The notes: generated from the sequence alone by a model not told the origin. 64,000 nt of DNA from Dimorphilus gyrociliatus (GCA_904063045.1 CAJFCJ010000007.1:2921404-2985403); one strand, 5' to 3'. Numbered from the stretch's first letter, positions 6,599 to 64,000 are shown. Translations and numbers: made by a program.

Positions 6599-6635
<37 letters not shown>

Positions 6636-15703: not shown

Positions 15704-15734
<31 letters not shown>

Positions 15735-16001
15735 GACCTGCATGTAACTATATATGAACTGTATAGGCTTAAAAAATGTACACTTTGCGTATTTTTAGGT
15801 AAACGTTAGCAGGAAATATGAGAATGAATATTACACATACAAATATACAAATTAACCGCGGGTGTTATTGTTTTCTAACATAAAATCCCTTTAGAAAAAA
15901 AGGCATACACAAATAACAGATGTCATCTTAGGTAAAGGAAATGATTATAAAGAAATAATGATCGACCTTTTATCAATGCTGCGAATCCAGGCGGACACCA
16001 T
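11233..16001 (-). CDS. RAPGEF4: Rap guanine nucleotide exchange factor 4 / Epac2-type cAMP sensor (CNB-A, DEP, CNB-B, REM, RA, RasGEF)
   Basis: First coding exon 16001-15967 [12 protein letters not shown], then [16 protein letters not shown]; [15 protein letters not shown]; [11 protein letters not shown]; [14 protein letters not shown]; [12 protein letters not shown]; [20 protein letters not shown]; last exon [21 protein letters not shown], stop at 11233-11235. Two cNMP-binding domains indicate the Epac2 architecture. Confidence 0.96.
15708..15734. repeat. (AT)13 microsatellite in RAPGEF4 intron 1
   Basis: Direct reading of an uninterrupted AT dinucleotide run. Confidence 0.9.
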
Positions 16002-23726: not shown

Positions 23727-26700
23727 ATGGTGAACTGGAATATGCAGCCAATTTCAAAAATACTTTTAATATCAACTATCTCAACAATTTTTAGTCTAAT
23801 AAACGTAAAAGGTATTTTTTGTAAATAAAATAGCGTAAACCTTTCTATATTAATAAAAATTTAAGGAGACGATTGTCCCTCTGGCTGGATAAGATATCTT
23901 GATAGCTGTATAATTAAACTTCATGACAATTCAAATTCGCCTCTGCATATAGATGCTTTATGCAGTAACTTGAATGCAACTGTCATTAAAATTGATTCTG
24001 CAAGAAAACTTTCATTTGTACATTTATATCTTGAAAATTCTGCTAAAAGCGAATATTATATTGGACTAAGTAGAAGGGATACGCAGAAAAAATATTCTAC
24101 TGATTTTATCTGGCGTGATGGCACTGTGATGAGCTATCATAATTTCGATAAGAATGAAAATAACCCTGGTATCGAAATGTATATAATTATGGAATCGACT
24201 CGTGGCGTATGGAGAGATGTTTCAGAGACTTATGGTAGTCCTGGATATATTTGCGAAATGCCAAAAAGTTTGCTATTCAATTTTTTCTTTTAAATTTCAT
24301 ATAGAAATTTTATATATATATTTTTATTTCAAAATAAGTTGATACTAGCGGTTGCAGACCATACTGGCACGTTCTAGATAACTATAGAGATACAAGAAGT
24401 TATGTTGAAGTAAATACTCCAAAGCATATTTGCCTTCAGGTACTCTTAATTTTAATTCATATTATTATTTTCGATTCCAGTTTTGAAATAATAACATCTA
24501 TTCTATACCTCTTTCTCATTAGGAATGTTTTTCTGGTACATATGGAGTATGCCACAGTGTTTCGTGGCATAGCCTTACAGGAAAATGTTTCCTACATTCG
24601 ACAAAAGTATATGCAGAAGATTTTGTCAACTTACAATTTCATGCACTCTATAAGTTTTATCAATGGGAATGTGAAGGTGATGCTGTACCGTCCAATATGA
24701 GGGAGAATACTGTCATAGATAACCTACCTGATTCTAGTTTCACAGCCTCCTCCGTTCGCATTTCTGACAACTCTCAACCTCAACAAGTCAAGTTCGAAAA
24801 TTATGAAAGAGAAAACCATCTTGGAACTTTCAGAACTGAGCATTCCGATCAATATCAGTGGCTTCAAGTGGATCTTATAAACTTGTATAATATAACTGGT
24901 TATCATATTTTGGGAGGTGAGAGAAAGCAGAAACGCACTCTAATGGACCATTACTTTTTACATAGTTTAAAGTGTTCGGACTTTTCTTGGTACCGCAGAA
25001 AGGAAACTGAAGAAATTATTGTAAGGTTTTTCATAAATATCTGAATAATCCTCATATAATCTTTAGCATCTTTAAAAGAAAATGTTAGGTGATAAAATGT
25101 GGTCTATGGTTCAAGTAATTCTATTCAAACATCCCTTTATTGCTCGATGTATACGTATAAATCCTCTATCTTGGCATTGGTCACCAGATATGCGTTTGTC
25201 AATTCGTGGTTCTCAGTTAGAAAAACAAATTTCTGTTATAGGTAATGTTAAAATATTGATGTTTTATAAAGACTAGTTATTCAATGCTAAAACAGAAATT
25301 ATTTATAACTCTTTTACTATGTTCCAGATCTTGAGGGGGTAGCATTAGGAATGGAAACAGGTCTAATAGAAGATTTTCAAATAACTGCAAAAGATATATA
25401 TACTTCTGGTTCAAATAGTAATCCTCCTTTCCTAGCACGATTAAGAGGGCGTTTTAGAGACTTTCCTTTTCAAGTTCCCTGTTTTCGTGTAACAGGGAAG
25501 GAGAATTGGTTTCATGTAACGTGGCAATTGCCAATTCAATTTTATGGGTTATCTCTAGCTCCTCAACCGCTTTCCTCCGGGTATCTCAAGTCATTTAGCA
25601 TGGCAGTAGCTGATTATTTTGATGAAATATCGGAAAAACTAAAGAATAGTAATGGTGATGTCATACTATTTACTGCATCAGTTGAACGGCCTACATTTAC
25701 TCCAATTCGTGTAACATTGGATGAACCAATAAAAGCTAGACATGTTCGAATTTATCCTGATTCATGGGATGGTGTTGGGTGTACAGTATTTGAATTTTAT
25801 GGAAAACTTGATGGTAACATTTTTTATTAAGAGTTCTTTCACTGTAATAAATAAAATCATTCTATTAGCTGTATGCCCCAAACTTGATCTTGAGAACAAT
25901 GCAACAACAACAGCAACTTGTCCAATGACAAAGCAGACTGTTATGCTTTACAATGAAACAGCGAATGTGACGTATCCAAGAGCAGAATCAATTGTCCTCA
26001 TTGAATTGAATCTTTTATATCACTTAGTCTCATTTCAAATTCAATTTGCCAGTACACCCCTTCCAGAGATGAAGATAGAATGGTCAAGAGATAACAATAT
26101 TTGGAGATCATTAGACAAATATAAAACAGAGAAACCGGATGATAAAACCGTTAATATAACTTTGTTAAACCTACATTCAGCTACAAAATTACGTTTATTT
26201 TTTTGGAGTTTAAACGTTGATTTTGTTTTTCCATGTATTGAATATTTTATTGATGCGTGTGAAGCTAAAATATGCCCACCCAACACAATAGAATACGGCA
26301 ATTCTTGCTACCAACATTTCACTAGTTTTGTGTCTGGGGGTACTAGTAATATAAACCATATTTGTGATAATTATGTTTGGACTGATAAAGCGTATGCCAC
26401 TGAAATTTCTTCCACAGAAGAAGATGCCATTAATTTCCATATATCGATGAGGTTTGTTTAATGTTTATAAACTAGCTTCTTTATTGTTTAGCAAATATAA
26501 TATTCACAGAGCTCTACATCACACATTCATTGGATTGACAGTAGATAATTCTGTTGCTCAAACACCTAATATGAAAATGCTTAATCCCAATCTAAATTGG
26601 CGATGGTCCAATAATGCACAACATAATTTTACTAAATTTGATCGTAATTACGATACTGGACAGCCTGAATATCTCACTGAACAATGTGTTGTAGGATTTA

Positions 26701-29700
26701 GAACTGGTTGGCACAATTTGGACTGTAACGCACCAGGATATTATATATGTGAAATGAAATCAAACAGTTTGTGTAATAGAGAATTTGAATTCTAATAATT
26801 ATCATTTTTTAATTTTAGCGAGGAGACTAACCCAGAGACAAAGGGAAGAAACTAAATGGTTTTATTTTCATAACACTAAATTAAATGAAGCACATTTGGT
26901 AAAAACTTACGACATTGCCCATCCAGAAACTTGTTCCTATATTTGTCAACACGAAACAATGTTTGAATGTAAAGGGTTTAGTTATAGGCATTTAGGTAAT
27001 GATAAAAGGTGTTATTTATATAATGGCACTACAAACTCTAATACTAATTCGATACCTGAATATAATATTCACTATTGGGATGTATGGGAAAAGTATACAA
27101 CAGTGGAAGGTTGTGAAAACCCTTTAATTGACGGTCCAAACGGAATTCCAGATTCCAATATAGAAGCTGATTCAGTACCAGACAGCACCAAATATGGAAT
27201 ATCTGAATTACGAATGGTCTTTCGTCAATTTTACGGTTCAAGGAATCCAGTACATGGTGGTTGTTTTAAAGGAGCAGGTTTAAATTCTTATCTAAAAGTT
27301 CGTATACAAAACAAACAATATATAAATACTAACAATATGAATTTCTCTGTTGCAAGTTTAATTTCGGAAGGATAGTTCAAGTGTCACGAATAAAAATAGA
27401 GGGAGGAGGTAGTGACTATGGCGCATGGATTAAACATTTCTATTTAGATATCGGCAATAGGACGGATATATTAACTAGTGTAAGATCATCGCATGGGACT
27501 CGTCGAGTAATATTTTATTAAAATTATTAAAAATTGAGATTATTACAATGATTCTTTTCTATAACTTTAGAAATTTGTTGGAAATTTTGATCGTGCTGTA
27601 TCCACTCAAAATTCTTTTGATCCACGTTTGATTGCTCAATATGTTAAATTTTTACCAGAATCATTTACTTCTGGATTCGCTGTAAGGATTGAAATGTACG
27701 GTTGTAATCATACTGGGGCTATTAATAAGTTTATTAAACCTCTTGGTTTGACAAGCCTATATATACTGCATTCTCAAATGTTATCTGAAAAGATTGTTAA
27801 TATAAATCACGGAATTCATGAAATCCGCTTAGATGTCCCACCTGTTTTTCAAACTTATGGATATTTTTACGTGGTGGGGAAATGGGGATTTGACCTTGGA
27901 ATCAGATATCATATATTTAAAACTATATCAAGTCCGAATGTTGGATATGTGAAAAGTTTTGAAGTAATGTATACCGATGATCCTACGCAATGGTCTTATG
28001 TAACAACAGAAAAAGGAGATATTAAAAAATTTGCCGTTCATCATTCATCTGAACTTGCTGAAGTACAATTTGATCCAGAAATCGTTGCTCGTTACATACA
28101 GTTTACAAACACTGGAGAATATCACTCTTCTCCTGCTATTAAAATGGAATTGTACGGATATCCAGCAAAACATCCCCAATTGAATATAACTGATAAATTT
28201 CCTAAAACTGTTTCTGCGTCATCTGAGAAAAGTATGACCAATTCCCCTAAAATGGCACTAAACCTTGTACATACTTTCTGGTGTAAGGAGGAGAGCGATT
28301 TGGACGGTTGGTGGTCAGCTGATTTAGGCGTTATATATTACATAGAAAGGATATTTATATACTATGTGGAGAATTTTTTAAGAGACAATTGCAATAATAT
28401 TTTAGTGTATGGCGCTCAGTATAACAAAACGAATATGAATAAAATGGATGAGGTGAGACGGTAGTGTTTAAAACTTTAATTAGAATATAACTTAATTATT
28501 CAAAATAGGAAATAATATGTGAATCGGAAGTGAATAGAACAATTCTGTTTTCCTCACCCGCTTTGCGATTTAGGTATATCCGCCTAAATTTTAACAACGG
28601 GCCGAAAGAGTGTATCAGATTTGAATTATATGGCGAAAAAGCACCAATATGCCCTCCAGGTTCAGTAAGACATTTAGATAAGTGCTATACAACTTCCGAG
28701 GTACCTGGAACATTTGAAGATGGCCGTAAATTTTGTGAGTCAGGATTTAGTTGGAAAGGTCCAGGTTATCTGATAATGCCAAAAAATACTTTTGAAACGG
28801 ATTTTGTTAAAAAGCATTATAAGTTAAAGTAAATATTCAAAAACAAAGTTCTTATAAACAATATCATTGTTATTAATTAAAATTCCAATGATTATCATTA
28901 GGCATCCATCCTATGGCGTCTATATAGGCGTCAAGCAAGTTGAACTAAATAAGTTTGTTTGGCTGGATGGAACACCTGTAACAAACCACTTACGACGATC
29001 CTATGGTTTTGTTCCTTATATACATCTGCCTTGTGTAATTAGAAGGGATTTTTTTGATAGTAGTGCTTGCACAGAACCCGCTTTTGCAATGTGTGAGACA
29101 AAGCCGAATCGTTAATATATTTAATATAGGAAAATTCTTATAAATTAACAATTTCTTCGTTCAATAGTTCCCGATGATGAAAAAGATTATAATGAGGAGG
29201 AAGAATGTCAGCCTCTCTATACTGTGAGAGATAATTATAGACTTGTGCGTCAGCCTGTAGCACAAATATATCATACGGATCTGAGAAATTGTTTGGGCTA
29301 TTGTTTATCTCAGAAGTGGTGTAAATCAGTTGCTTGGAAATACGTGTATGTTTCATTATAATTTTTAAAATTGAAGATGCTTGTCTATATATATATATAG
29401 TATATCTATATATGAAATGAAATATTTACAGATTAAATACCCGAGACATATGTCAATTGTATAATGTAACAAGTTCCATGCTAAAATACGACCAGAGTGA
29501 ATTTGTTGAAGAGACAAATTTATATTACTTTTTCGAACAGTTTTGCTTTGATAGAAAGAGTTACAAACTATTACCAGAAGGGAATCATGAAACAGTCGAA
29601 GAATTTAATGTAACAGTTAATATTTATCAAAGTCTTGGAGCTGCATATAACGATTACCGTCTTGGGTTTAATGCTCCATTCTATTATGCTGCTCTCTGCT

Positions 29701-32700
29701 CTAATTCGCATATTTTTGAATGCTATTTAGAAGTTAATTTTGAGAAATTGGTCAAGTTGACTGCCTTTACTACATCTAGTAGATATAAATATGTACAGTT
29801 CACAAGAACGGCACAACTATTTTATAAAAGATCTTGGTATGACCAGTGGCTAGCTGTACGAGATAAGGATGGAGATATCATAGTAGGATAAAATTATATA
29901 TTACTTATATTGTAATTTAGTTCAATTTACACTACAGAATTATTTTATACAAGAGAGTGAACGCTTTTACAATCATATAGAACTTCCCTCGTTTGTTATT
30001 TGTAGGGGTTTTCGATTCAATCCAACAAGTAAAAGAACATATTCAAGTCTAATTATTCAATTGTATGGAAGATACTTAGAGGATAAAATTCATCTTTATA
30101 CTCCAAAATGTAATCATCCATTAGGACTTGCACATTTAAATAAAATACATGGTTCTCACATAAGCGCTCCATCCTATTCAAGTTCTGATTATGTTTACAA
30201 TGTTAGATTAGACAGTCAAAACTGTTGGGTAACTAATTCAGCAGCACCCAACGATTATATACAAATAGATTTGGGTCATATCTATTACGTTACAGGTTTT
30301 GTTTCTCAATCTTGCAGAGATTATGACGAGTTTATTTATGAATTTGATGTCAAATATTCATTATATAGAATACACGGATGGAAGTCATACGAAGAACCAT
30401 CAGATTATAAAGTAAGAATTCAACAATAGTATTAGCATATAAAGAATGATATAAGTAACCATTATAATTTACTATTAGACAATGTATCTACGGTCCGATC
30501 CCAAGTTAACAAGAAATATGAAATACTTATTGCTTTTTAACGAAACTCTAGAATTAAGATTTATCAGATTTGCAGCAAAAAGCTGGAATAAAAAGAGAGC
30601 TCTTCGTTTGGAAGTTGTTGGATGCATTAAACGTAACGTATCACTTATATAAGCTACAATCGTGCCTTATTAGCTTTGTTTGTAATTTTTTATTTTATGA
30701 TTTTCCATAGAGCAAGATGCAATAACAAATCCAGAAAATGACCTAGAGAGAATTAGCGTTGACGAAGATGCCTCAGGAAGTTCGCTTTCCTGGGGGTCAA
30801 TAGATAAAAGTGCTAATTTAGCATGTCCTAAACAATTTTCCCAATCAAGTAAAATAATTATAAACTTTAAAAGAGTTTACATTATCACTGGATTTGTAAT
30901 TATGTCCAACACAACTGGACAGTTGAATAGTACAATAGAATATTCAGCAGATTCAGTAAACTGGAATAAATATACCGACGGTTTTGATTATATAAGATCA
31001 AACGTAAGTATCATCTTATAAGTAATATTCTCTTATCAATTATATTTAAATATTTATATATATTCATGTTCACTCTCACTAGTCGACACACGAAATTTTG
31101 CTATCAATTCCAATAATGGCTATATACGTATCACTCTCTATTTATAGTGATACCTTTATATGTTGGAAGATATCTGTTAATGGGGGAAAGTATTTAGGTA
31201 TAGATATAACAGTTTATACTTGATGAAAACCACTTAATTTCATTGAAATTTTCTTTTAGAATGTCCTCCTGGATATTTTCTTTTCGGTATAAAATGTATT
31301 TCCTATCCTTATTCGACACCCTATAATCATGACGATGCTGTTGAACAATGCAAAGGAATACCATGGCGTGGTGAAGGCCACTTAATTACACCAAAATATG
31401 ATGAAGTGCTAAATGTATTTCTTCAAGGCTTTTTCTCAAAGTAGGCGATTTATATTGTAGCTTTTATGTTGGTAATCTGTCTTTAAATAGAAATTCAGAA
31501 ACTACTCGTATGGGTTTGAAATACAATACTAAATTCGAATGGTCAGATGGAAGTACATTACCTACGGATGAGGTTATAAGATGGGACTCGTCAATTGGCG
31601 CTGGTTCTTGCGGAGGATTCCAAAAGCTTAGAGGATTCTGGAGAAAAGTATCGTGTACAACCAAACTTTTCATTGCATGTGAAAAAGAGGCATCATGTAA
31701 TTTTTTCTCCTTTTATTTAGATAACACTAATTGCTGTATAAAATCTTTTAATACAAAATAGTGCTGCCTAGTCAAAAGACTGGTAAATTGTGGACAGTAA
31801 TCACTTCCGCCTCATTAAACACAACAAGCAGTAGTTTGGTTTACAAGAATGATTATAATACAAGATTTGATTGTCTAATGGCGTGTAACGAAGAAACAAG
31901 ATTCACATGTGTTTCCTTTGCTTTTGATACCGATACAAAAGATTGCATTCTTTACTCATCAAATACTTATTCTAAAAATAGCTACCTTAAGAGGGATACA
32001 GATGAGGCAGACAAATTATATTTTGAAGCTATTAATCCTGGTTGATTATGTTTCTTACGAGAAAACTTAGATTCTAATCTAAAACATTGTTTGTTCTATC
32101 CTTAGGTAAATGCTCACTCAGGCTTATTGAAGGAGAAGTTTTAGGAATAAAATGGGACGTTTCTTCAGAATATGATTCGTCAAGAGATAAATTTAAATTA
32201 CCATTACACGTACGAACAGGTTCGAAAGGCTATTGGAGATCTAGTGATGCTGATACAAATCCATGGATTCTCTTCTCATTTGAACAATCTTTAAGTATCT
32301 CTTATTTTGTATTACAAGGAACGGGTAAATTGAGTGACAACGGATATGTCACAAAATTCAGAATACAATCATCTTTAGATAATGTTATTTGGATGAATGT
32401 TAACTGGGATTATAGTAAAACTTATGATTTTGAAGGATTATTTGATAACGTTTATGCAAGATCATATATATTTGAAAATTCCTTAAGGATTCAATATCTT
32501 AAATTTAACTTAATCGATAAAGAATCTTATTTTGCTATGCAAATTGAATTATATGGATGTGCGGAATTTATTCCAGATTGTTTTTCTTTACCATCATCAG
32601 ATTTTGAAGTGAAGGGAGCCGATAAAACTGTAAAATTAAAATGTTTTGAAGATTGGACTATTCTTGGTCAAAAGTTATCCACGGATGATTCTTGGTCAAA

Positions 32701-35700
32701 AACCTGGTCTGATTATAAAAATGGATTTGAAACTGATAAAGAATTTTGGGGCGGTAATCAGTTGGCAACCTATTTAACTAGTTTTAGAGAGTATAATGGT
32801 CGAATAGATATGTGGTCTAAAGATGGACGCCATTTGCATAATGAATTCAAAGGAATCCATATTGAAACAGAAAGCAAATCTTACGCAAAGAACATTTCTG
32901 AATTTTTAAGTGGTAGTGCACTATCAAAGGATTTTTTAACAATGTCAAACTTTTATGCAATTGATAGTGATAATGAAATATCTTGCGCACAAAATTCAAA
33001 AGCTGGATGGTGGTATTCTCAGAATTCTTGCTCTTCCTCAAATCTAATTGGCGTCAATTCTCTATGGTCTGTTGATATGACTGATTTAAACAATGAGTAT
33101 AAGTTTGAAGTTGAAAAGTTTATCTTTAAAATTAAATCAGAGACCGCCTGTTAGTATACTTTTCTTTTATACTGTTTATCATTAAGAATAGGATTTATCT
33201 TTGCTTTAATTTAATAGATAATATTGCTATTGGAAAGATTGCTTTTCAAAAAGTAACCAATGGTGATAATAAAGCTGATTTAGCAATCGATGGTATACCT
33301 TTAAGCGATGCTATGCTTGGCTACTGCGCAATTGGAGAACTTACAACTGATCCCTATTGGGTTGTTAGCTTACTTAAACCTTTTAATGTCACAAGAATAG
33401 CAGTCGTTAATAGGAAAGACTGCTGTTGTAAGTATAATTTCTTGACAATAATGAAGACCTTTATTATATTATCTAAAAAATGTTTTCCCTTTGTAAATAG
33501 CTTCGGAATTATCTAACTTCAAAATAGGCTTATCAGATACTTTTTTGAACAACAATTTCGATTCTTTGTTATTTAAATTATGTAAACATTACACTGGAAC
33601 TGTAGGAGCTGGTGTAAAACAAGAAATCGAATGCGAAGGTGGAGCTACCGGAGGCTCTTATTTAGGTATTTGGATGGAAGGTTCAAATCGTAGATTAAGC
33701 TTGTGTGAGGTTGAAATATATCCAAAACTAAAATACGGTATAAATATCTAATTAGTAGTGTTGAATATCTGTCAATTTTTTATTTAAATCCATGTTTATC
33801 AGAGTCAGACAAGAAGTTTGGAGATTATTGTGAATCGGATTCCAATTGTATTGAACAATATACTTTTTGTCTTCCACAAAAAGAACCACAGAATCTTGAT
33901 ACTATATCCTACACATGTCAATGTAGATCCTATAGTATTCGAAGAGATAATAAATGCTCTCCAGGTAAGCAATAAGATGAATAAGTTGTTTCCTAGCTTT
34001 TAACATTTCATTTTTAAAAATAGCTACTGATGTTCTTTTAAAAAATATTGAATTTGGAGATAAGTTTATACGAGAAGAGGAAACTATTGTATCATCTACA
34101 ATCTTATTATCTAATAATGCTGGTTGGCCAATTGCCGAAGTAACTTTGCCAAAGATCAATTTCGACTTTAACCTAGTTGCTTCGGATTCAGATAATAATC
34201 TTACTGCTTTATGGAGGAAAAATTTTAAATTAATTTCAAAATCTGGTCTTAACAAAGCCTTACCTAGCAGAGATGCTACCAATTCATCAAATAGGGGTGA
34301 AATATCTATATCCTTATCAGTTTCTTTTAAATTTCCAATGTTACAATGCTTTAACAAGACCTACGCCTGTGGCAATGTAATGGAACATTCTATTAGTGAA
34401 TTTATAGAATGGGATAACACAAATAATCAAATATGCTTTCTGTTATCTTCCTTTATAAACTGCCAACCAGAAATAGATCTATCGATATCAAAAATAGCTC
34501 TCATTTCTACAGAAAATGTCTATAGAAGTGTTCCCCAAAATCATACCTTTGTTATTACTATATTAAATAAAAATTCGAATACTCATGATGTTATTCAATT
34601 GTTCGATGACTATTTTAATTATGATATTGAAGTACTTCACTCCAACACACCTGTAGATATCAATAGTGTACATCCAAATTGGAAGAAAACATCATTAGAC
34701 CTAAATCAAAGGCAGAAAGGGGTTAAGATTGGAAATACTTTAGATTTGACAACAAAAGTTTCAACATATTTCTCAAGATCTGAATGCGAAGATGATTTAT
34801 TCGCTTGTTTTCGAATTATCGTATCAAATACTTCGTCGTATAATGAGAGTAACAGAAGTGATGATATTTCATGCTTCGATCTAACGCCGTATAAGAATTG
34901 TACACCAGGTGTTTATCTAAATATTACTGTTTTCTATTAACTGTTTCTTGATGTTTATCTATAATTACAGCTGTTGAAGTTAAGGCGAATCTGACTATAC
35001 CTCAGCAAATCGTTATAAGAGGTTATACACAATACATACAAACGTATCTTCAATGGACTAATATTGATAAAAGATTTGGTATTGATATTGTTCCACCAAG
35101 CAGATACAATTTTAATGTAACTATATTTTTCACGGATATTAACTTGGAAATTGACGATTTGGCATTAAGTTTGTATAGCGTAGTAAACTCATCAAACATT
35201 CAATCCAATTTATCAATAAATAACTATCTTTCATGGGAGTTTATGAGTACTGTAAACATTTCTAGAACTCATTGCTCGAAATACAAATATCTCTGTTTTA
35301 AAGTAATGCCGGGAGAAGGATCATCGTATAGCCTTTTTGATAATAAAAATAGTATTTCTTGTTGGGATATGAAGAATATTATAAACTGTATAGGTGTAAT
35401 GGTAAAAGGACTTAGTTTTGAGCTCACCAACGACAATTTAATGGAAGGCAATGAAAGTCAATTCTCACTTCTATGGACTGAAGGAACAGACATAAATTAT
35501 AGCATAAATTTTACCAATACAGATTCAATATCATGGAATTGGTTTGATTCGGGTCATACACAATCCTTTGGACCAATTAGCAAACATACCTTAGATTATA
35601 TTTATACAAGCTATGATGTTTATAATGTTAGTCTAAGAGTTTGGAATGAAGCTGGAATTGAAACTCGTTGGTTATTAAAGACTGTAGAACCAATATTAAA

Positions 35701-46088: not shown

Positions 46089-46255
46089 GATTTTTTGTCT
46101 CGTCTCTTTTTAATTAATTTGGTACACAACTTTTTTAATTTTTATCGATTGGCTTTATCTTTTAAAACATTTTTGATCTATGTTTTGTACCAGTTAAATT
46201 TTATATTATATTTAATGATGTATTGATAAAAGCAAATATTGTTTGTCATGTTTAC

Positions 46256-46261
46256 AATAAA
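46256..46261 (+). terminator. Candidate polyadenylation signal of copy A
   Basis: AATAAA about 170 nt downstream of the copy A stop, in a T-rich 3' region. Confidence 0.45.
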
Positions 46262-46382
46262 ATAATTATTGCTATATAGATTTTAAAGTATTCATTAAAT
46301 GTCAAGCATAACTTACAAACTATTTTTGAATATATTCAATTGGATTCTAAACATTAGCGCATCAACAGTAAAAGCTAGAAAT

Positions 46383-52300: not shown

Positions 52301-55300
52301 ATTTATTAATATTCATAGAGCTCTTCTATCTTTCAGGTGTATCGTCTGTCTTGGGAAGCAAATTATCAATATCATTCAGAAATTATTCCTAATATAGAAT
52401 GTATTACTTTAAGATTTTATCCTGTCTCGTTTCAGGGCAGGGCTACTCTTAGCCTCCAACTTTATGGAAACCAATTATCAAAGGATGATAAAAAATTGAA
52501 AATTTGCAGCTATCCACTGGGTGTTTCTAACCCCTTTGTTATAACTGATTCTCAAATAACTAGTTCAAGTTATGGGTCACATTCAAACGTTAAAGGATAT
52601 CCTAGCAGAGTTCGTGCTTATGGAAGTTATTGCTGGTTTCCTTTATCTTCCGATCCGGACAAATACATTCAAATAGATTTAGGTTATGAATATAAAGTTA
52701 CTGGAATTTTGTTGCAACCATGTAATAGCCACAATATTACCAATTATGCTTTTGAGGCTACAATGAAATATTCTTTAAACCGTTTAAAATATTGGCATTA
52801 TTACAAGGAAAATAATCAAATTAGGGTTTGTTACTCATAATCTATAGTCATAATTATTTCATGTCAATTGACAATTATGTAACAATTTTTAGAAATTTAA
52901 ATTAGGGAATACTCCACCAATTGAACATAGCTTCAACTTTATCTTTCATCTTAATGATAGTGTTGAAGCAAGATTTATTAAATTAATATCAACGCTTGGA
53001 GGTGTTCATAACGGATTCAGATGCGAAATTCTTGGATGCTCAAAACGTTCGTATTGTAAAAATGAACTGTTTTTAATCATTTATTAATTTTAATTATACG
53101 AACAATAGAAAAAGGATTCATTGAAAAAGTACCCAATCATTTCAATGTTTTTCCTAGTACTATGAATAGCCTATACTCTTTTGAACCATTGACTGAATAT
53201 TCAAATTTGACATGTGCTCATTTACTCAAAGAATATACATTAATAATAAATTATTCGGCAATTTATTATATAACTGGATTGAGGATCCTTACAAATTTAT
53301 CTGAAAATTTGAATTTAAGCGTAGGATACGGAGTTGAAGCTCATAGCTTATTTTATCTAAATAATGGAATAAATCATATTCAAAGTGACAAGATACACGA
53401 TTTTCTCTTTTCGATTCCTATCCTGGCAAAATATTTATCTCTATCTATAAAGAATGAACGAATAATGTGTATAAGTTTAACAGTAAATGGAGAAAAATAT
53501 ACAAAGAGTCTTTATTAGTTTCTTTTATGTTTAAGGTGTTAATAACAGTATTTATAACTTTTAAATAGGTTGTCCACCTAACTACTTTCTCTATGGGAAG
53601 AGATGTATCAGTATATCATATCAATCGCAAAGTACTAGAAACTACTCTACATCTATTTGTCAGTCTACAAAATGGAAAAAAGGACATTTAGTTTTACCTA
53701 AATATGATGAAATGTTTAGTATCTTTCTACAAGAATTATTGTCTTTGTTAGTATTTCAAAATATGTTATTTTTGTAATTTAATAATTAATTTATACAAAT
53801 TTTAATCAGTTCCAATTCAACTGTCTTCATTGGTTTAAGTAAAATATCAGATTGGATTTGGTCTGATGGAGACATTCTAAAAGCTTGGAGAGTGGGCAGC
53901 CAAGTCAACGATAGCCTCTCTTGCGCTGGACTGAGTTTCAAAGGGTTTTGGACTACTCTAGACTGTCAAGATGATTATGGATATATTTGTGAAACAGAAC
54001 CAATATGTGAAAATTTATATTATGATTATCTTTATTTCAAACTCATTAAAAAACCATTTTACAGCTTTCAATGAAAACAATAGCGGATATCAATGGAGTG
54101 TTGATAAACATTATATTCTAAATTCTAAACATTCACAAAGTAATTACACCATTCAAAATTTTGCATCCGAACAGTGTATTATAGCATGTTTAGAAGAAGA
54201 TGAGTTCTTTTGCCAATCTGTTTCTTACAATCCATTGCCTAAAACCTGTACACTGCATGAAGCAAACAAATATTTTACGGGAGTGAATCTTGTTAAAAGT
54301 GATTATGATACTAAACATTTTGAACTTTATCAAACAGGTACTAGGTATTACTAAATATTGAGCAAGTTAAATTTAATTGTTCCACACTGTTACAGGCAGC
54401 TGTAACAAGGGAATATTAGCTACCAAGTCTTTTAGTTTGAGTTTGTCAACCTCAAAACCATATTCGTCAGATTTTAATGGCTCTGAACTTGCTTTTAATG
54501 CTGTGTCTAATGGAAGATATTGGAGAGGATTTGCACGTGTTAATCCATGGATATCTCTTCACTTCGGAAATTTGGTACTATTTACAAGATTGGAAATTAG
54601 AGGTGGTGAAAATGGTTACATAAGACGCTTTAGATTTCTGTCATCTCTGTCTAATGATACCAATAATGAAGTTCAAAACAGCAACACTTCTCTATTTGAA
54701 GGTTTAGAGAATACTCTTGATGGCAAAGTTTATCTTTTCAAGCCTCCTTTAATAGCCAAGAGTATAAAAATTAAAATAGATAATTTTCAAGAGAATCCAG
54801 AATTGCAAATGGAATTATATGGATGTATAAAATTAACAAAAGACTGTTTGTCATTGCCTACTTCTACTATGAGTTCATTAACATCAGATAAAAAGTTTAA
54901 AGTGACATGTTGGAATGATTGGACATTAATTGGAGCTAAATTATCTTCAGATAGCCATTGGAATAGATCGTGGACGGAATTTAAGGATGGATTTCGTACA
55001 GATACAGAAATTTGGACTGGTAATGACTTCATATCTATGTTGACAAATACTAATCAATATATAATACGAATTGATCTTTGGTCAACTAGTGGTGTTCACT
55101 TTCATTCTGAGCACGATTATTTTAAATTAGACACTGAAGAAAATCAATTTAGAATTCATATCAGTAATTTCTCCAGTGGTAGTGTTTTTAATCAGTATTT
55201 TGAAAATGAATTTCATTTCCATACATTTGATAAAGATAATGACGTATTATGTGCAAATACAATAGGAAGTGGGTGGTGGTTCCCATCAAACTCTTGTACT

Positions 55301-58300
55301 AATTATTCATTAGTAGCACAAAATCTTCCTTGGTACACTAAAACATCCAACACTTTTAAAATATTAACTCCGACAGTTAAATCATTTATATGGAGAGCAA
55401 AGCCTAAAACGCATTGTATGCTAATTAATATCACGACTGAAAGGCGTATTAAACAATTTATTTTCAGATAATATTGCTTTATTCAAGAATGCTTATCAAA
55501 AAACAACAAATGAAAGTAACGAACCTAGTTTGGCCGTAGATGGTCTGGTTGATGTAGGATCTTGCGTTATTGGAGCAAAAACCGATAATCCATGGTGGGT
55601 TGTCGATTTAGTCAGAGAGACTCGAGTAAAAGTTATTCAAATATGGAATCGAAGAGACTGTTGTTGTATGTGAATAATTATTAACTTGAAAACATTAATA
55701 TTTAACTAGAATTATATCCTTTTATAGATAAAGAACTGAATAATTTTACAGTTGGCGTTGCTAAAAACTTCTCTACAGAGAAATTTAACTATTCAGACTT
55801 TAGTATTTGTGCAAACAATAACGAAACCTTATTACCAGGAGAGGCTAAATTATTAGAGTGTAATAGAGATGTTACGATTGGTTCCTATCTTGGAATATGG
55901 ATGATAGGAGAGTCCCTTAGATTGTCATTATGTGAAGTTGAAGTTTATTCTGATAATTATTATGGTTCTGACGCAAAATATGGAGATTTTTGCGATACTG
56001 ATATAAATTGTATAGAGGTTTATACAATTTGTCTACCAACATCTGAACCTATGGATTTTACACCCACAACCTATACCTGCCAATGTAGAGCTTCAACAAT
56101 TAGATATGGAAGTGATTGCATACCCGGTAAGAAAAGAAAAAGTATAATTCTATAAATATTAATTAATCGTTTACTTACACAGAAGCTGACTTGTACCTAT
56201 CTTCTCTGGGAAAAGTAGAACCTTCCGATTATATAATTAGAAGCGATAAAACACCAATTACTCTGTCGATACTGATAAAAGGTAATAGTGGATTACCAAT
56301 TTTGCCAACAGTTTTACCTGTAACAAACTATAATTTGACAATTTATGCATCGAATTCGATAAATTCATCTGAAGAAACGTTGAAATTGTACCCTATTCAA
56401 TATAATTATTCTGGGTTCAACTCAAAACTAGTACCAAATTTTGATAAAATCCTTGCAATACCTGTTCAATTAACAGTTGATGTTGCATTTGAAGTAGACG
56501 CTAGAGTTTGTCGAAATATAGGAAGTATATGCGCTATTCTAACTGAATCAAATTTTCACACGTACAAAGAATCTAACATGATAGACAACAAATACTGCGT
56601 AAGTGCACAACAGTTCTTCACGTGCCAACCAGGTAATAAAGAATTAATAAGTGATTTCAAGATTAACATTATTTCTTTAATACTCTCATCAGCAATAGAT
56701 TTAAAAATAGAACTATCATATGTGGAGCCCTTCTATAGAGATTTAGCTCAGAATTGTACAGCCAGTTTAGTTATTCGCAACCTGGGTTTTCCAAAATATG
56801 ACGTTGCTCCAGTTACTGGAGATGACAAAAATTTTGAAATACTTTATACTTTCGTAATTCTAAATTATGCAGCTGCAAGCCCTTTAAAGCATAGACCACT
56901 TGAAGCTGCAATAGAAGAATATCAACAGGAAATTCAACAGAATAAAGAAATAAATATTACAGGCTCTATTGAGACAAATTTTACATTTTCAGAGTGCATG
57001 GCTAAAGTCTTTCTCTGTCTTTATATATCAACAAATGAAAATTCAAGTTTCGTAAAGTTTTATGAAGATAATAGGTATGTCTGCTTCGATTTGAAACCAT
57101 TTAAAACATGTTCTCCAGGTAAGCCTTGTTCACTCTCAAAAATATCAATTTCTACATAAATAGTTCTTAAAATAGAAATACAGATACAAGTATCATTGGA
57201 GCTTCCAGATCTGATATTTATAAGGGGATACTCTGATCAATTCTTAGCAAAACTAATAGTTACAAACTTGAATGATACACTATCTATTAAACATACGGCA
57301 AATACTTTTATGATAAACATACTGATTTCTGAAAAAAATTTATCACAGGAAAATGGATCTTATCTAATTTTGAATGAAATATCTAAGGTACGAACATTGA
57401 ACCCATCGCAAAATATTACTATTTTTATCAATGATTCATTAATTCTACCAAGAAAAGATTGTTTAAAATATAAATATTTATGTGCGGAGACGGTGCCATC
57501 TATTAATAGGGTTTATTCACTTTATCCAGGCAAATTGCATATTTCTTGTTTAAATTTAACTAAATTCAAAAATTGTATTGGTTTAGAAATAAAAAATTTA
57601 ACGATAAACATAGAATCGGAAAGTTATTTTGAAAATGAAACAACCCTATTTAAAATATCTTGGAGTAAGGGTACAGATGTTAATTTTACCATTTCGTTTG
57701 GAGATGGTACTTATAATTCCTGGACCTGGTTGAATAGTTCACAAAATTCTTATTTAAAGTATTTCATACATGTTGAACACGTCTACAACATATTCGGAAT
57801 GTACAATGTTACTTTAGTTGCTGTTAATAATCTTGGAAAACAAGCATGTAGTATCTTGAAGAGAGTGGAACCGCCGTTAAACAAGTACATTGCTTTAGGG
57901 ATATCGTATATTCCAAATGAACCACCTCTACCAGTTTCTTTTTCAATCTCCCTACTCCATAATGTATCCCAGGACATTAATATGACTTGTGTCTGTGATC
58001 TTGAGGGACAAGTATATCAACATAAATCCCTAAATGTATCATCTCTAAATACAGAACTCTTTCTTAACTATATTTTCACCCAAGATGTCGACTATGCCGA
58101 AGCCATGATCAATTGTAGTAACACTATCTCAAACATGTCTCGTAAATTTCCATTGTTTCTTCAACAAAACGTAACCAAACTTAGCTTGAGCTATGGTGAC
58201 CCTTTTCAACGATCATTTTTCAATCTCAGTTTGATGTTAACCTTAGTCAATGGATCTGATGTGGAATATAATGTATCTTTTGGAGATGGACAAAGAGAAG

Positions 58301-61300
58301 TGTTCAAAAATCCAGATTTGTTTGCCAATACTAAACCATTTTTTATCGATCATCGTTTTGAAAATAACGGAACTTTTACGACCTATGTTACCGCGAGAAA
58401 TAAACACTTTAGTACGTCAGCGTCTATATCTGTTACTATCCAACATTCTGTTGAAAATGGGCTCTTCGAGTTCTATTATATTGAGCCAAGAACTTTACAT
58501 GTATCAATTATACAGGAAGATATTTCGATAATTCCAACAAATGTAACATGCAGCATGAAAATGAAAAACCTAACGTTCTTCACAAAACCTTCTGTAAACC
58601 TTGTTGAAGGAATTTACGAAATTTACACATTTCCTCCAATGTACAACCAAAGAAAGCATAAAAATTTAAACTTAACGATTGGCTGCTTCAATCAAATTTC
58701 AAGTGTAGTTATCAATCAACCGATTAGTTTTGTAGAAGAGATTTCTGGCGTTAATATTTCTACGACAGCTTTTGCTGTTGAATTAAACACCAAATTACAG
58801 TTTCATATAGTGATCGAAACTGGTGAGGATATGAATTTCATCTTAGATTTTGGTGATAATTCAAACACTACAGAATGGATAGCAAATTCCACTAGTGACC
58901 TCTTTTATAGTCACATATACACACAAGTTGGAAATTATACACCCCAGTTAATAATAAACAATTCTGTCAATCAACTTATAAGATCTCTTGAACAACCAAT
59001 AATTGTACAAATCTCCATTAAAAATCTAACTGTTAAAGGCCCAGAAGTGGTAGATCTAAGCAAACAGCCAGCTATATTTTACTTGGAAGCTAATAAAAAC
59101 ATTCCAGGAGCAACAGATGTCTTCTGTTCCGTTAAAACGCCTAAAAGTACAGAAGCTACCAATTATACTTATCAACCACAATTGACAAATCTTCGGTCTA
59201 TTTCTCAAGAATTTTCATTCAAAAGATCTGATACTGGTATTTCATTTATTACAAACATAACCTGCAAAAATCTCGTCAGTGCTGCTTCCGCAAGCTTATT
59301 AATTAGTGTTTACGAGCCAATTACAGGGTTGACTTTATCACAAATTAAAAGAGGCGCTATCCCTTTACAAGAGTTTTTGATAAGTTTAGATGTTAATTCA
59401 GGTTCATCTGTGACATTTAATATAGATATAGATAAAGGAATGCATGTTGCGAGTAAGAAACATCCCGATTTGTTTGCAAGTAACCAATCGATATCCTTTA
59501 AATACACGTTTACTTCTATTGGAAATTATACAATCAATGCGGCGGCAAAGAATCATATAGGCAGTGAATTTATCATTGATCAAATACCAGTTCAAAACAA
59601 AATATTACCATTTAATTCTTTAACAAACACATCTGTATTATGGCCACCTGGGGTTGTTCATTTCAAGTTGATTTCTCAATTAGATCAGAAAGATTTATCG
59701 CATATTCATTGCAAGTTTAACTTCAGTAATGGAATGACTAAATATGAGTATATTCCAGAGTGGAAAGCTTCAGTATCATATCATTTCATTGAAAAATTTC
59801 CAAGATCAGCCGTTGGAATTATCAATTCAACAATTGTATGTGAAAACTTAGCGTCATCTACGACTGTTTTTGCAACAACTGAAATCATTCTTGATGCAGT
59901 CGTAGTTGATTCTATCAGAGATAATGGAACAATTGTAATTACAAATGAAACGTTTATCATTACAAATCTAAAGCGGATGGGTACCAACGGATGCTTAATA
60001 TACAATTTGGGTGATGAAAAAGGAACAAAGAGGGCGTTTGGCGTTAATAAATATTGTAAAGATGTAGCCAAGAAGAGATCCATACCCTTTCAAATTATTG
60101 ATTTTGATACAACAACTATAATCTTCAATCATACTTATGAAAAAATTGCGTCATTTAACGTTACAGTAAAGGCATTTAATCATATAGATGAACAGCACAT
60201 GTGGTTTATCACAGAGGTTTCTCCATTTTATTGTAATCCTCCAAATGCCTCATTATCAAAGGAATATACTAATAAAACGTCAATAATTAAAAGTTTCAAG
60301 CGTAAATCATTTACGATACCTTCCGTGTACGACACAAATTGTACAATGTCATTCAAAGCCATGCATGAATGGAAAATTTTTGATATACAATCAAACAATT
60401 TGGTTCACACGTTGACGACTACAAAGTTTATTCTTCCTCCGAGGACTCTTCATTATGGAAAATATAGAGTTGAATATCTAATATATATGATGTATTACAA
60501 GGAATTTAACAATAGCTATACTGCCTATTTCGAAATTATTCCAACTCCTCTACATCTTGATATTGTTGGCGGAAATAGCTTGTCAGCTCCATATGATTAC
60601 AATATGTCAATAAATGCGGAATCTTTAAGTTACGATCCTGACAATGATCCAAATGAAAAATTCAAAGGTGTAACCTTTAAATTCTTCTGTCGACAAGAAC
60701 AAGAAAAACTTCCAATATCAAAAGAACTCAAAGGTGTAAATTTCAAAATAATTCCAACCATGGATGAATATTTAAAACAAGGAGGTTGTTTTGGCAATGG
60801 ACCAGGATTAACATCAATTAATCAGGACGGTCATTGGAATTTTAGTACATTTTATATGTTTCCAAATAGAACATACATTCTTGAAGTCGAGATGTTTTCC
60901 ATTTATGCAAACCGAAAAGAAACTTTCGTAACTAGACTAAAAATACTTTCGCCCAGTCCACCAAATCTAGAAATCATGTAAGATTTTTTAAAGGAAACTT
61001 CAAGACTACAAAATATATTTTCTATAATAAAACTATTCATTTCAGATGTTTAAGCAACTGCGCAGAGAAAAGAGCGCTGAATAAGCCTTCTTTGAATGCG
61101 GTAATTTGCCATGGTGGATGCTCAGGTCTCTATTGGAACATCAGTTACGAGTGGACATTATTAATTCAAAGAAATGGTATTTGGAAAGAGAATCGATCGC
61201 ATGCAATTGTAGATGAAAACTTTAAGGATAAAATTGAATTTGCAGCTGGGGAACTTGCGGGAGGCTTTAGATACATGCTAATCATAACAGGAGTCTTGAA

Positions 61301-64000
61301 AGCTGTAGGTTTTCCTGGTTTAACAAATGCAACATTCCTAATAAACAAACCTCCATTTGGAGGAAGCTGTAATTGTCTTCCAAGACAAGGATTCGCTTCT
61401 ATAACCAAGTTTGAAATTAGTTGTATGAATTGGAAAGAATTTGAGAAACCAAAAAATGCTCCGGGATTGAAATATGAATATCGAGCTAGGATAAAGGGGA
61501 GCCGAATAAGCTTTCTCCTTCATTTTTCCTATAAGCAAGATGGTAACAAACTAATGCTACCAGTTGGCGATTCTGTTAATCTCTTAACTGAAACAATAAT
61601 TCACATAAGAGATTCTGTTGGTGATATATATGAATTTATCTTAGATGTTAAAGTTAAACCACCACCGAAGCCAGAAGAACAATTGATGAACATGGCTTTC
61701 GAATTTTTCAATATATTCAAGTTTAAGGAAAAATTTGAAGAAGGTAACATAACAGAAATTGCATCAAGTTTATATTCATTGACGTCAATTCTCAATGTGG
61801 ATCCAAACAATTTGTTTCAAGAAGCTGTAAATATTACTGAAATGCAGAAGCAGAGGAAAAACTGCAAAATTTTAAAACTAAGGCAAGAAATACGGTTAAA
61901 AATAAATGAGTATGCTATGCAACTACCAAATAAATCTCTGGACGAATTAGAACAAAAAGTCGGTGTTATTACCCCAATTTCTGTTAAGTCTAAAGAGATA
62001 AGCTATATCCTATTGGTAATTATATATTTTATACTAATGTTAATTATTAATAAGCTTTCTTCAACTTGACATTCTGACTCTCAGCTACAACAATCAAACT
62101 ACATCAGCGTTTTAAATGCTGCTCTTATAAATCGAGATATCTCCTTCTCAAAGCGATTACAGTTGTCAACAAGTATTACGTTTGTCGTTATTATTTTACT
62201 TTTTAATTTCTGTTCAATATTTTATTAAAGGTTTATTTGAACTATCTATTGACTTAACGGCTGGAGCAGACGCGTACAAACAAACTATTGCAAATGAAAA
62301 AATATTCCAATCAAACCCAGTTCCATCAAATAACAGTTTTCATTGTTATATTTTAAATTATACGAGAGAAGGATTTGATACAAAGGGACAAACTTTGTCG
62401 AACTCTAATGAAACTGTTGAAGATAATTATTTACTAAGATTGAAAGCTATCATTGAGAGTATTCAAGAAGTGACCAATAGCTTAACAGATAATATATTTC
62501 AAAAATTTGACTCTTATCATTCGAAATTTGCAGTGAACTACAACAAAGTCTTTATACAGTTTGAAAAAGACAATTACTTAGCTATACAAGGAAAGTCATA
62601 CTTATCGGAGAATGGTTTTGTCAAACTAAATATGATAAAAAATCTAAGCACAGGTGATATGTGCTTGCGAAGCAAAATAATAATGACTAGAGTTAATCCC
62701 TATATGTGGGATAACTCCGCGTCGAATGTTACATCAACAGTAACTGAGTTTGAAATTCGACCTTGCGATTCAATATCAAAACAACCAACTAGAAAGAAGA
62801 GAAGTATACAACAAGATACTCAAACTAACTTCTCACTTAGTCTGAATATGAAGAATACAAACAACGGTATTCAATATATAAACACTACAAAGAACACAGC
62901 TCTGCATATTCTCAATGCAACAAGGAATATCCTCCTATTGACCTTCCATTTGAGAAGTGAAGATACCATGTCAGTCCTTATTGGTTACAATTTCAGACCT
63001 AGTAATGATAGGAAGAATGCATCGTTCATCTTACCAAATGTAAACAAAACATGCTCATCCAACCTGGATAGTGAAGACTGTGACGAATTGAGAAGGACCA
63101 TTATGCTTAGACCAAAAGAAAATGCAACAGTGATGGTTGTTGTTTCGTGTTCAAACTGTTCAAGTCAACTTCTCAACTATAGTATTCAAATAACATATCC
63201 ATTATGCAAAATGTGGACAGATGGCAGATGGCAAGAGAGAGATTCTTGTAAAATTGATCAAGAGACAACAGTATCAAAAACAAGATTTACGAGTAATCTA
63301 TTTGGGAGTTTGGGAGCTGGATTAGATATGGCCCCAAATCTTATAGACTTTGATACAGTGTTTGACGACTTTGCGAGCAAATTAGCTGATAATGCAGCTG
63401 TATTTGGAACAATATGCGCATTGTTAGCTCTTTTCATTCCCTTGGCTTTATTGGTAAGAAGAATGGATAAGAGAGATAGATTACTCTGGATGTCTGTACC
63501 ATTAATGGATAATAGGAAAGAAGATAACTATGAATATGAAATTCATGTCTACACCGGAAATGAAAAAGATGCAGGAACCAGTACAAAGGTGTCTCTAATA
63601 TGCTATGGAGCTGATTCAAGAACTAGAGAAAGAATTTTGGAATCTAGTGTTTCACATACATTTGAAAAAGGATCCGTTAAATCATTCATTATGACTACCA
63701 ACAAATCTCTTGGATACTTAGTTTGCTTGAAAGTATCCCTTGACAGACAAAAATTCTCTTATACTCCTTTTAATGATTGGTTTCTATCCAGAATAGTAAT
63801 TATTGATAAGGCTGCAAATACATGGTACAACTTTGATTGTGAACAGTGGCTATCTGATCAAGATGAAAACAGTGAAACTGAGAAGGTTCTTGTAGCAACG
63901 AGAAGTGGCATAAAACCTCAATTAAATCAACTACTTAAACGTAACTTCTTCCGACGTCTTACTGATGATCATTTGTGGGTATCTGTAGGGGCAAGAAGAA
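46383..64000 (+). CDS. Giant polycystin-1 (PKD1/REJ)-like receptor, copy B (3' truncated just after PLAT)
   Basis: Signal peptide MMIFRLSLILITFAILYG then CPDGWMRNLNYC. Same domain order as copy A; exons chain in frame through canonical introns to the window end (roughly 5,250 aa visible, estimate). The final exon (from about 62231) is open to the edge, so it is missing from the ORF track. An upstream ATG at 46299 is also in frame. Confidence 0.92.
62692..63491 (+). repeat. Partner of the 800-nt block at 42342-43141
   Basis: Identical apart from one synonymous position (62922). Confidence 0.97.

Follow-up and report, generated by a model that had tools for sequence, protein, structure and literature searches.

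A tandem pair of giant polycystin-1-family genes with lectin-type mosaic ectodomains in Dimorphilus gyrociliatus

Gene organisation of the locus

The subject of this study is a stretch of 64,000 nucleotides from the annelid Dimorphilus gyrociliatus (GCA_904063045.1 CAJFCJ010000007.1:2921404-2985403), in the following referred to as the window, in which all positions are counted from the first letter. The window is AT-rich with a G+C content of about 31%, and from about 23.7 kb to its end the plus strand consists of dense stop-free pieces separated by very short gaps. Pfam scans run on about 47 such pieces reveal two successive domain series. The first, copy A, comprises Lectin_C, PAN_1, many F5_F8_type_C, Fibrinogen_C, F5_F8_type_C_2, PKD, REJ, PLAT, Polycystin_dom and PKD_channel, and the second, copy B, starts at 46.3 kb and repeats this order until the window ends at PLAT. 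Judged by their sequence, A and B are polycystin-1-family genes of the PKD1L2/REJ-like type with 11 transmembrane (TM) segments, whose core falls into a spiralian PKD1L2-like clade. Each gene encodes a single chain in which this polycystin core is preceded by an N-terminal array of recognition- or adhesion-type modules. An earlier note, made from the DNA alone, had described a tandem head-to-tail pair with identical domain order; this is borne out by the Pfam matches and by our gene models, B being seen up to PLAT only.

Spliced models were obtained by dynamic programming, which combined codon log-odds from the long exons with iteratively trained matrices for GT-AG donors and acceptors and a prior on intron length; they were afterwards split at the boundary between A and B. 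They define the following features:

23727 to 46088, plus strand: gene A, complete, 34 exons, 6,737 amino acids (aa), ATG at 23727 and TAA at 46086-46088 (own spliced model)
23727 to 23811, plus strand: exon 1 of A, signal peptide (hydrophobic segment aa 9-27)
46089 to 46382, plus strand: spacer of 294 nt between A and B, including AATAAA (read from the sequence)
46383 to 64000, plus strand: gene B, partial, 27 exons in the window, at least 5,342 aa (own model, Pfam, family profiles)

The 34 exons of A yield a spliced frame of 20,214 nt with zero internal stops, and its introns measure 44-91 nt, which is close to the published median of 66 bp in this species (PMC7854359). Behind the N-terminal signal peptide the protein reaches TM1 at aa 5768, after 5,767 residues, and hydropathy discloses 11 hydrophobic segments in total. 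The dimensions given for A in the earlier note, about 6,740 aa with about 5,750 of them extracellular, agree with this model, as do the eleven hydropathy peaks together with Polycystin_dom and PKD_channel with its claim of an 11-TM channel subunit. Gene B begins with ATG 46383 and a signal peptide of its own, reaches TM1 at aa 5143 (63400-63456) and exits the window inside PLAT. The signal peptide occupies a separate first exon in A (23727-23865) and shares one exon with the first C-type-lectin domain in B (46383-46815), a difference of intron gain or loss between the tandem copies.

Two other interpretations of the locus were considered and rejected. A ciliate-type genetic code with true in-frame stops at 47489, 50945 and 57157 is dismissed as all three lie within short GT-AG introns of the model. 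A first model run joined A and B into a read-through fusion via a 275-nt "intron"; the TAA of A is, however, followed by AATAAA, and B possesses its own Met and signal peptide. That the genome paper of this species finds no operons (PMC7854359) likewise counts against such a fusion.

Architecture of the ectodomains

Iterative hidden Markov models (HMMs) of the domain families were built from A, B and four paralogues described below. They assign to A and B a common order consisting of signal peptide, four super-repeats, fibrinogen-C domain (FReD), F-type lectin, an EGF-like stretch, three Cys modules, PKD repeats, REJ, a GAIN-like region, TM1 and PLAT. In both proteins super-repeat 1 is composed of a C-type-lectin domain (CTLD), a PAN domain, two discoidin domains and a degenerate discoidin-like domain (hhalign probability 74%, E 2.7e-5); super-repeats 2 and 3 each contain CTLD, PAN and three discoidin domains, and super-repeat 4 contains CTLD, PAN and one discoidin domain. 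The resulting inventory per copy, 4 CTLD, 4 PAN, 9 clear plus 1 probable discoidin, 1 FReD and 1 F-type lectin, agrees with the earlier count of 4, 4, about 10, 1 and 1. Pfam Lectin_C alone recognises 3 pieces of A and 2 of B, as compared to the 4 CTLDs per protein found by the family HMM. The ectodomain features of A are:

23931 to 32557, plus strand: lectin-type array of four super-repeats (Pfam Lectin_C, PAN_1 and F5_F8_type_C; family HMMs; hhalign)
32573 to 33100, plus strand: FReD (Pfam Fibrinogen_C PF00147, E 2.3e-16)
33149 to 33804, plus strand: F-type-lectin-fold domain (Pfam F5_F8_type_C_2; family profile)
33805 to 33963, plus strand: EGF-like stretch ahead of the Cys modules
33964 to 35398, plus strand: three Cys modules of about 145 aa each, Ig-like beta-sandwiches (family HMM, AlphaFold, Foldseek)
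34971 to 40587, plus strand: giant exon 28 of 5,617 nt with the third Cys module, 15 PKD repeats and the start of REJ (its start confirmed by the RNA joint 34909-34970)
39809 to 43049, plus strand: REJ domain and GAIN-like region up to TM1 (Pfam REJ, E 9.8e-25)

The FReD of B is recognised by the same Pfam family (PF00147) with E 7.7e-21, and inspection by eye indicates that the conserved Cys pair and the acidic loop of this domain are retained. Homology of the adjacent domain to F-type lectins is clear, as the family profile matches the solved fucolectins FBP32 (3CQO, 2.1e-47) and eel agglutinin (1K12, 2.5e-25).

No Pfam family covers the Cys module. AlphaFold predicts it as all-beta, in tandem beta-sandwiches with a mean predicted local distance difference test (pLDDT) value of 78; Foldseek returns generic Ig-like sandwiches, among them integrin calf/thigh domains and transglutaminase barrels, and an Atlas search gave weak DUF11/CARDB leads only. 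The module also occurs in PKD1-like proteins of Macrostomum (P0111, P0155), always directly ahead of the PKD repeats. We read it as a further part of the stalk, not as a recognition module. The PKD repeats themselves number 15 in A (35396-39808; Pfam PKD E 1.6e-39) and 9 in B (Pfam PKD E 7.7e-31) according to the family HMM. In total, the N-terminal extension adds about 3,300 residues in recognition- and adhesion-type modules to the polycystin core. Many domain borders coincide with phase-1 introns, which fits an assembly of the array by exon duplication.

Stalk end and membrane core

The membrane-proximal part of A comprises:

43050 to 45655, plus strand: membrane core with TM1, PLAT, TM2-6, TOP domain, TM7-11 and pore (Pfam, hydropathy, PDB matches)
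43146 to 43643, plus strand: PLAT, between the hydrophobic segments at aa 5768 and 5973 (Pfam PF01477, E 3e-16)
44378 to 45025, plus strand: TOP/polycystin domain (Pfam Polycystin_dom, E 5.4e-15)

In B, REJ (PF02010) is matched with E 2.7e-16 and 2e-21 and PLAT (PF01477) with E 1.6e-15. At the end of the GAIN-like region only a degenerate remnant of the GPS motif is visible (A 42936-42971, B 63286-63321), and Pfam GPS does not match the GAIN-end piece of A. Alignment with amphioxus relatives, which read C-x-C-x-H-(L/M)-T at this site, reveals F-T-S-N-L-F-G in every family member of D. gyrociliatus, also in a short paralogue without the lectin array. Both GPS cysteines and the cleavage triad are lost in these proteins, and two upstream Cys as well as Trp residues of the GAIN end are retained. 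The PKD-REJ-GAIN stalk postulated in the earlier note is hence present as far as PKD, REJ and a GAIN-like region are concerned, but without the cleavage triad and the two cysteines of the GPS. About 165 residues upstream of the remnant an RKKR|S motif is found (A 42441-42452, B 62791-62802), which is invariant in the four paralogues. Since the triad is lost, processing, if any, would use this conserved site instead of autoproteolysis; judging from the motif, a furin-type proprotein convertase may cut at RKKR in place of the GAIN reaction.

The membrane core of A resembles two different solved channel components. Exon 41904-44165 matches human polycystin-1 (6A70_B, 8.5e-27) over a region that begins shortly ahead of TM1 and includes PLAT and the helices that follow. 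The subsequent exon 44234-45799 matches polycystin-2 at 2.2e-32 over the TOP domain, the pore helices, the filter and S6, and also PKD2L1; its match to solved PKD1L3 is far weaker (1.8e-9), and no solved PKD1 chain is matched by this exon at E up to 1e-5. With PKD2 as its best match, the channel half is well preserved and of a PKD2-like kind, and Pfam PKD_channel recognises it with E 2e-21. At the filter position (45521-45541) F-G-H is found as opposed to L-G-D in PKD2, and the His is present in all paralogues which cover this region. Behind TM11 a C-terminal tail of about 120 aa follows.

A family of giant paralogues

A HMMER search with the PLAT exon against 1.84 billion representatives returned 3,007 matches, only four of which exceed 45% identity, namely three D. 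gyrociliatus proteins and P0002, a protein from a sequencing-run contig; look-ups by name contributed two additional giants. The paralogues of this species recovered in the analysis are:

DgyrCDS14777: giant paralogue, 5,543 aa, full Pfam set
DgyrCDS14438: giant paralogue, 6,071 aa, full Pfam set
DgyrCDS14890: giant paralogue, 5,744 aa, full Pfam set
DgyrCDS6354: giant paralogue, 6,065 aa, full Pfam set
DgyrCDS13672 (P0004): short paralogue, 2,634 aa, with PKD, REJ, PLAT and channel, without the lectin array

The four giants, which are unnamed in the databases, possess the Pfam set of A and B and are collinear with both over their full length. A is 55-60% identical to DgyrCDS14777 and DgyrCDS14890, and B is 36% identical to DgyrCDS6354. 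Compared to its close paralogues, A shows 55-69% identity in the lectin array and 71-83% in the TM segments; compared to the distant ones, the respective values amount to 21-39% and 65-70%. In a six-protein alignment of A, B and the four giants there are almost no A- or B-specific insertions or deletions of at least 12 residues, the exceptions being, in A, six additional PKD repeats and 16 residues of the C-terminal tail and, in B, three small differences. The models of A and B are thus at least as good as the public models of their paralogues.

A quick maximum-likelihood tree built on the core unites the D. gyrociliatus proteins in a single clade (98 in the Shimodaira-Hasegawa-like approximate likelihood ratio test, SH-aLRT), which lies within a spiralian group that includes "PKD1L2-like" proteins of Macrostomum and Lingula. 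DgyrCDS13672 nests, with weak support, among the giants; either it has lost the array secondarily or its gene model is truncated. Together these data show a lineage-specific, partly tandem expansion of at least six giant members with fast-diverging ectodomains and a slower membrane core. According to the paper on the D. gyrociliatus genome, only nine families are expanded in this species, most of them being local duplicates with a link to immunity (PMC7854359); PKD and lectins are mentioned neither in its text nor in its available supplements. We also note a 30.5-kb contig from a sequencing run (L002, SRR23372228) which displays the same exon layout over positions 1-19346, with discoidin pieces, a 348-aa discoidin and FReD exon, PKD/REJ, PLAT and channel exons. 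Its core is 60% identical to that of DgyrCDS6354, and it is either an unlisted paralogue or the orthologue of a close relative.

Transcript evidence and divergence of the two copies

Contigs assembled from one public RNA run (X1, 2017) were compared with positions 31000-36999 of A. The run contains 81% of the sampled words of 31000-37000, its contigs show zero differing letters with respect to the window, and their GT..AG joints coincide with all nine introns predicted within this stretch:

31198-31259, 31441-31490, 31697-31761, 32041-32105 and 33150-33217, plus strand: introns 1 to 5 of the tested stretch of A, confirmed by X1 contigs
33428-33500, 33738-33802, 33965-34023 and 34909-34970, plus strand: introns 6 to 9 of the tested stretch of A, confirmed by X1 contigs

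A loose contig end at 31083 corresponds to the end of the preceding predicted intron. Nine of the 33 introns of A are thereby checked by RNA; the remaining ones rest on the model and on the near absence of A- or B-specific indels in the alignment with the paralogues. One contig of 3,101 nt starts in the discoidin/FReD exon (32517), crosses four short exons and ends in the giant PKD exon (35944). As to whether the lectin array and the PKD/REJ/channel part are separate transcripts, which the earlier note had named as the observation that would refute it, RNA thus joins the array to the PKD exon at the junction tested.

At the protein level A and B are 32.6% identical in the lectin part and 45.6% identical in the PKD-REJ-GAIN part, the former value being in line with the earlier estimate of about one third for the ectodomains. 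At a protein identity of 33%, synonymous sites between the two copies are saturated. A blastn comparison and a 50-column identity profile reveal one pronounced deviation from this divergence:

42330 to 43140, plus strand: putative conversion tract, A side, virtually identical to B 62680-63490
62680 to 63490, plus strand: putative conversion tract, B side, partner of 42330-43140

This tract of 0.8 kb extends from the GAIN end over the GPS remnant and TM1 into the linker ahead of PLAT; its edges are clean and its flanks about 50% identical. Beyond it, identity lies between 40 and 78% up to the window end, with 58% for the PLAT protein sequence, and a second identical tract is not seen behind PLAT. 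The simplest reading of this pattern is a gene conversion between tandem paralogues 20 kb apart. The claim that the membrane-proximal parts are homogenised accordingly holds for this single tract, PLAT being divergent again. Similarly, from the notion of a variable sensor on a constant channel it can be retained that the ectodomain diverges much faster than the core; constancy is overstated in view of the PLAT value, and the channel of B lies beyond the window.

These data also bear on the possibility that the architecture is an artefact or a sign of decay, i.e. that lectin array and channel core belong to separate genes, that A and B are pseudogenes, or that the pair results from a duplication in the assembly. 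Neither A nor B was found as an exact database protein, the identical tract might in theory stem from the assembly itself, and B is poorly represented in the RNA run. The database blank says little, since the word-based search used also missed the known paralogues. Against an artefact stand the 20,214-nt stop-free spliced frame of A over 34 exons, the RNA contigs which bridge the lectin/FReD exons into the PKD exon, and the recurrence of the same fused layout in four annotated paralogues and in the independent contig L002. As A and B differ at about two thirds of their residues, they are no duplicated assembly. We therefore consider this explanation largely refuted and its remaining probability very small.

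Upstream of A, the piece 22638-22973 on the plus strand encodes the C-terminus of a sorting nexin (Pfam), so that A does not start any further upstream. Two long reading frames are present on the minus strand farther ahead of A (3493-4818 and 13201-14403).

Comparison with known polycystin-1 relatives

Among named proteins, the core is most closely related to PKD1L2-, PKD1L3- and PKDREJ-like proteins of hemichordates, a brachiopod, molluscs and amphioxus. The sea-urchin SpREJ family comprises ten PKD1 relatives of 1,450-3,716 aa, some of which possess C-type or SUEL lectin domains (PMC1934368). SpREJ1-10 (PMC1934368, PMC2120838) resemble the family described here as expanded PKD1 relatives with REJ, PLAT, PKD repeats and up to 11 TM segments, in which a varying recognition part, in some members an N-terminal C-type or SUEL lectin, is placed on a shared core. 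In contrast to A with its 6,737 aa, they contain few lectin domains at most within their 1,450-3,716 aa, and none has been described with PAN, discoidin, fibrinogen-C, F-type lectin or a four-fold super-repeat. Furthermore, most of them retain the GPS whose cleavage triad is lost in the D. gyrociliatus family, and their genes are single copy as opposed to the tandem arrangement of A and B.

Vertebrate PKD1L2, PKD1L3 and PKDREJ are the nearest named relatives of the core according to HMMER ranking and tree, and share with it 11 TM segments, PLAT, the TOP domain and channel-like last six helices; PKD1L2 and PKD1L3 also contain one C-type lectin domain each (PMC1934368). They differ by their short ectodomains (about 1,700-2,500 aa in total) and, in the case of PKD1L3, by a channel half to which that of A scores only 1.8e-9, compared to 2.2e-32 for PKD2, and by the FGH filter of A. 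Human PKD1 (4,303 aa) likewise exposes a large ectodomain with C-type lectin, many PKD repeats, REJ and GAIN ahead of 11 TM segments and PLAT, and its structure 6A70_B is matched by the first membrane half of A (8.5e-27). Its LRR, WSC and LDL-A domains, however, were not found in A or B, its HL|T cleavage site is lost there, and the pore domain of A is PKD2-like. A is 1.6 times longer than PKD1, the added mass consisting of lectin-type modules.

Mosaics of their own are also seen in uncharacterised PKD1L-like predicted proteins of other marine invertebrates. They were recognised with the family HMMs and Pfam, and those of Branchiostoma (P0063, P0085 and P0101) include XP_078659501.1 and XP_078659478.1:

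Branchiostoma lanceolatum "PKD1L3" CAH1271112.1: 1,995 aa, two F-type lectins, FReD, EGF, CTLD, GPS, PLAT, channel
Branchiostoma protein: 3,260 aa, LCCL, discoidin, Xlink, Trefoil, two CTLD, F-type lectin, PAN, two fn3, then core
Antedon (crinoid) protein XP_071965421.1, P0115: 4,066 aa, WSC, PKD, three discoidin, REJ
Haliotis (abalone) model P0175: 6,593 aa, EGF-rich extension

The amphioxus and crinoid proteins combine the same domain types on a PKD1L-type core but are smaller (1,995-4,066 aa), differ in domain order and have no super-repeat; in addition, they retain a canonical GPS (C.C.HLT or HMT), and CAH1271112.1 retains the fucose triad. Since the core tree places the amphioxus proteins in a remote clade, an independent assembly of the mosaics is most likely. 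Our literature search retrieved no paper on lectin-mosaic PKD1L-like proteins of amphioxus, crinoid or abalone, and none on the present architecture or on polycystins of D. gyrociliatus. The earlier statement that no polycystin of such architecture has been described is consistent with this result; the principle, however, is not unique in view of SpREJ and the amphioxus and crinoid mosaics. Among the proteins found, the A/B family carries the largest and most elaborate lectin-type ectodomain on a polycystin-1 relative and is new in scale. It is not categorically new, as sea urchins possess expanded lectin-bearing PKD1 families and amphioxus smaller mosaics.

The SpREJ likeness raises the possibility that A and B act on the sperm as receptors for gamete recognition, as annelid counterparts of the receptor for egg jelly of sea urchins, and were diversified by sexual selection. 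The combination of a REJ-family core with lectin-type domains as in SpREJ1-3 (PMC1934368) and the fast divergence of the recognition part would fit this role, and several of the nearest relatives are named "receptor for egg jelly-like". Such names are, however, assigned automatically. Moreover, the dwarf males of D. gyrociliatus inseminate their sisters directly, leaving little room for recognition of the egg-jelly type. We regard a gamete receptor as distinctly improbable.

Functional interpretation

The interpretation which we favour, and to which we assign about an even chance of being correct, considers A, B and their paralogues as receptor subunits of TRPP-type channels. The proteins would reside in the plasma or ciliary membrane and form a complex with PKD2-like subunits. 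Their long multivalent ectodomains would capture polyvalent external ligands, for example glycoconjugates, matrix or the surfaces of microbes or conspecifics, with different paralogues providing different specificities, and binding or pulling would be passed via the PKD/REJ/GAIN stalk to the TOP domain and the pore. Functional precedents are given by the SpREJ proteins and human PKD1L3/PKD2L1 (PMC1934368) and by Platynereis PKD1-1/PKD2-1 in ciliated sensory neurons (PMC6294549). A further report, to judge by its title, concerns activation of PC-1/PC-2 by the PC-1 N-terminus (PMC7728438).

A number of observations weigh against this interpretation. One of them concerns the state of the presumed sugar-binding sites. 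The sugar and Ca site of C-type lectins is characterised by an EPN or QPD motif together with a WND motif. Alignment of the eight CTLDs of A and B reveals in none of them a pair of EPN/QPD-type and WND-type motifs, the nearest approach being GEPE in the second CTLD of B. In the F-type lectin, the fucose-binding triad H...RxDxxxxR is retained with all three residues in amphioxus P0063 and in FBP32. The position of its His is occupied by other residues in A, B and all four paralogues, A reading C-A-I-G-E at the place of C-T-H-T in fucolectins. The second Arg is gone in A, B and three of the four paralogues, which read RKDCC(S/E)S(E/D) or RRDCCYKE compared to RGDCCxER, and the fourth, DgyrCDS6354, is devoid of the entire RxDxxxxR segment. 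With the canonical residues of both lectin types missing, the ligands need not be glycans. The designation "glycan-gated" used in the earlier note is therefore not supported; carbohydrate binding by these recognition-type folds is possible, but unsupported by canonical sites.

The remaining objections concern pore and transcripts. The acidic filter residue of PKD2 is replaced by His, and the subunit may or may not line a conducting pore. The X1 run contains only 22% of the sampled words of 52000-58000, so that expression of B is weakly supported. For A, the RNA support consists of assembled contigs rather than single molecules, from one run and over 6 kb only; the transcript being checked in part, shorter alternative isoforms are possible.

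An alternative which we regard as unlikely is that the proteins act as matrix-anchored mechanosensors in ciliated sensory cells, the adhesive tip being fixed to cuticle, mucus or glycocalyx and force gating the channel via a tether of PKD and Ig-like modules. The degenerate sugar sites together with the long beta-sandwich stalk, a chain of 15 PKD and 3 Ig-like modules, keep this tether model alive. Discoidin, PAN, CTLD and FReD commonly bind matrix, and with the loss of the GPS triad the chain remains covalently continuous at that point. Annelids also offer a precedent in the hydrodynamic sensing by PKD1-1/PKD2-1 (PMC6294549). On the other hand, the conserved RKKR site could cut the chain, and Platynereis PKD1-1 belongs to another PKD1 subfamily according to the tree of the same study. 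A tether does not obviously need at least six paralogues with tips at 21-39% identity; that so many divergent paralogues exist speaks for recognition rather than for a purely mechanical function.

If A, B and their paralogues are recognition receptors coupled to TRPP-type channels, they might, together with the independently assembled amphioxus proteins, even represent an unrecognised class of "ionotropic pattern-recognition receptors", in which modules of innate-immune type (CTLD, FReD, F-type lectin, discoidin, PAN) are fused to a TRPP-type channel subunit. We advance this broader idea as a rather doubtful one. If true, microbial, dietary or conspecific contact would be converted directly into a cation current, and the repertoire of paralogues would give specificity.

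Significance

The ligands of large polycystin-1 ectodomains are a long-standing open question, also in the context of kidney disease. With at least six paralogues, the present family constitutes a natural series in which a recognisable PKD2-like pore is combined with very large, modular and fast-diverging ectodomains. Its host is a tiny culturable worm with a genome of 74 Mb, rendering a search for ligands by means of ectodomain fragments as well as loss-of-function tests feasible. The loss of the GPS triad together with the conserved RKKR site amounts to a natural test of whether GAIN autoproteolysis is required in polycystin-type receptors. Finally, the independent emergence of similar mosaics in amphioxus suggests that the coupling of recognition modules to polycystin channels is a recurrent theme in marine invertebrates.

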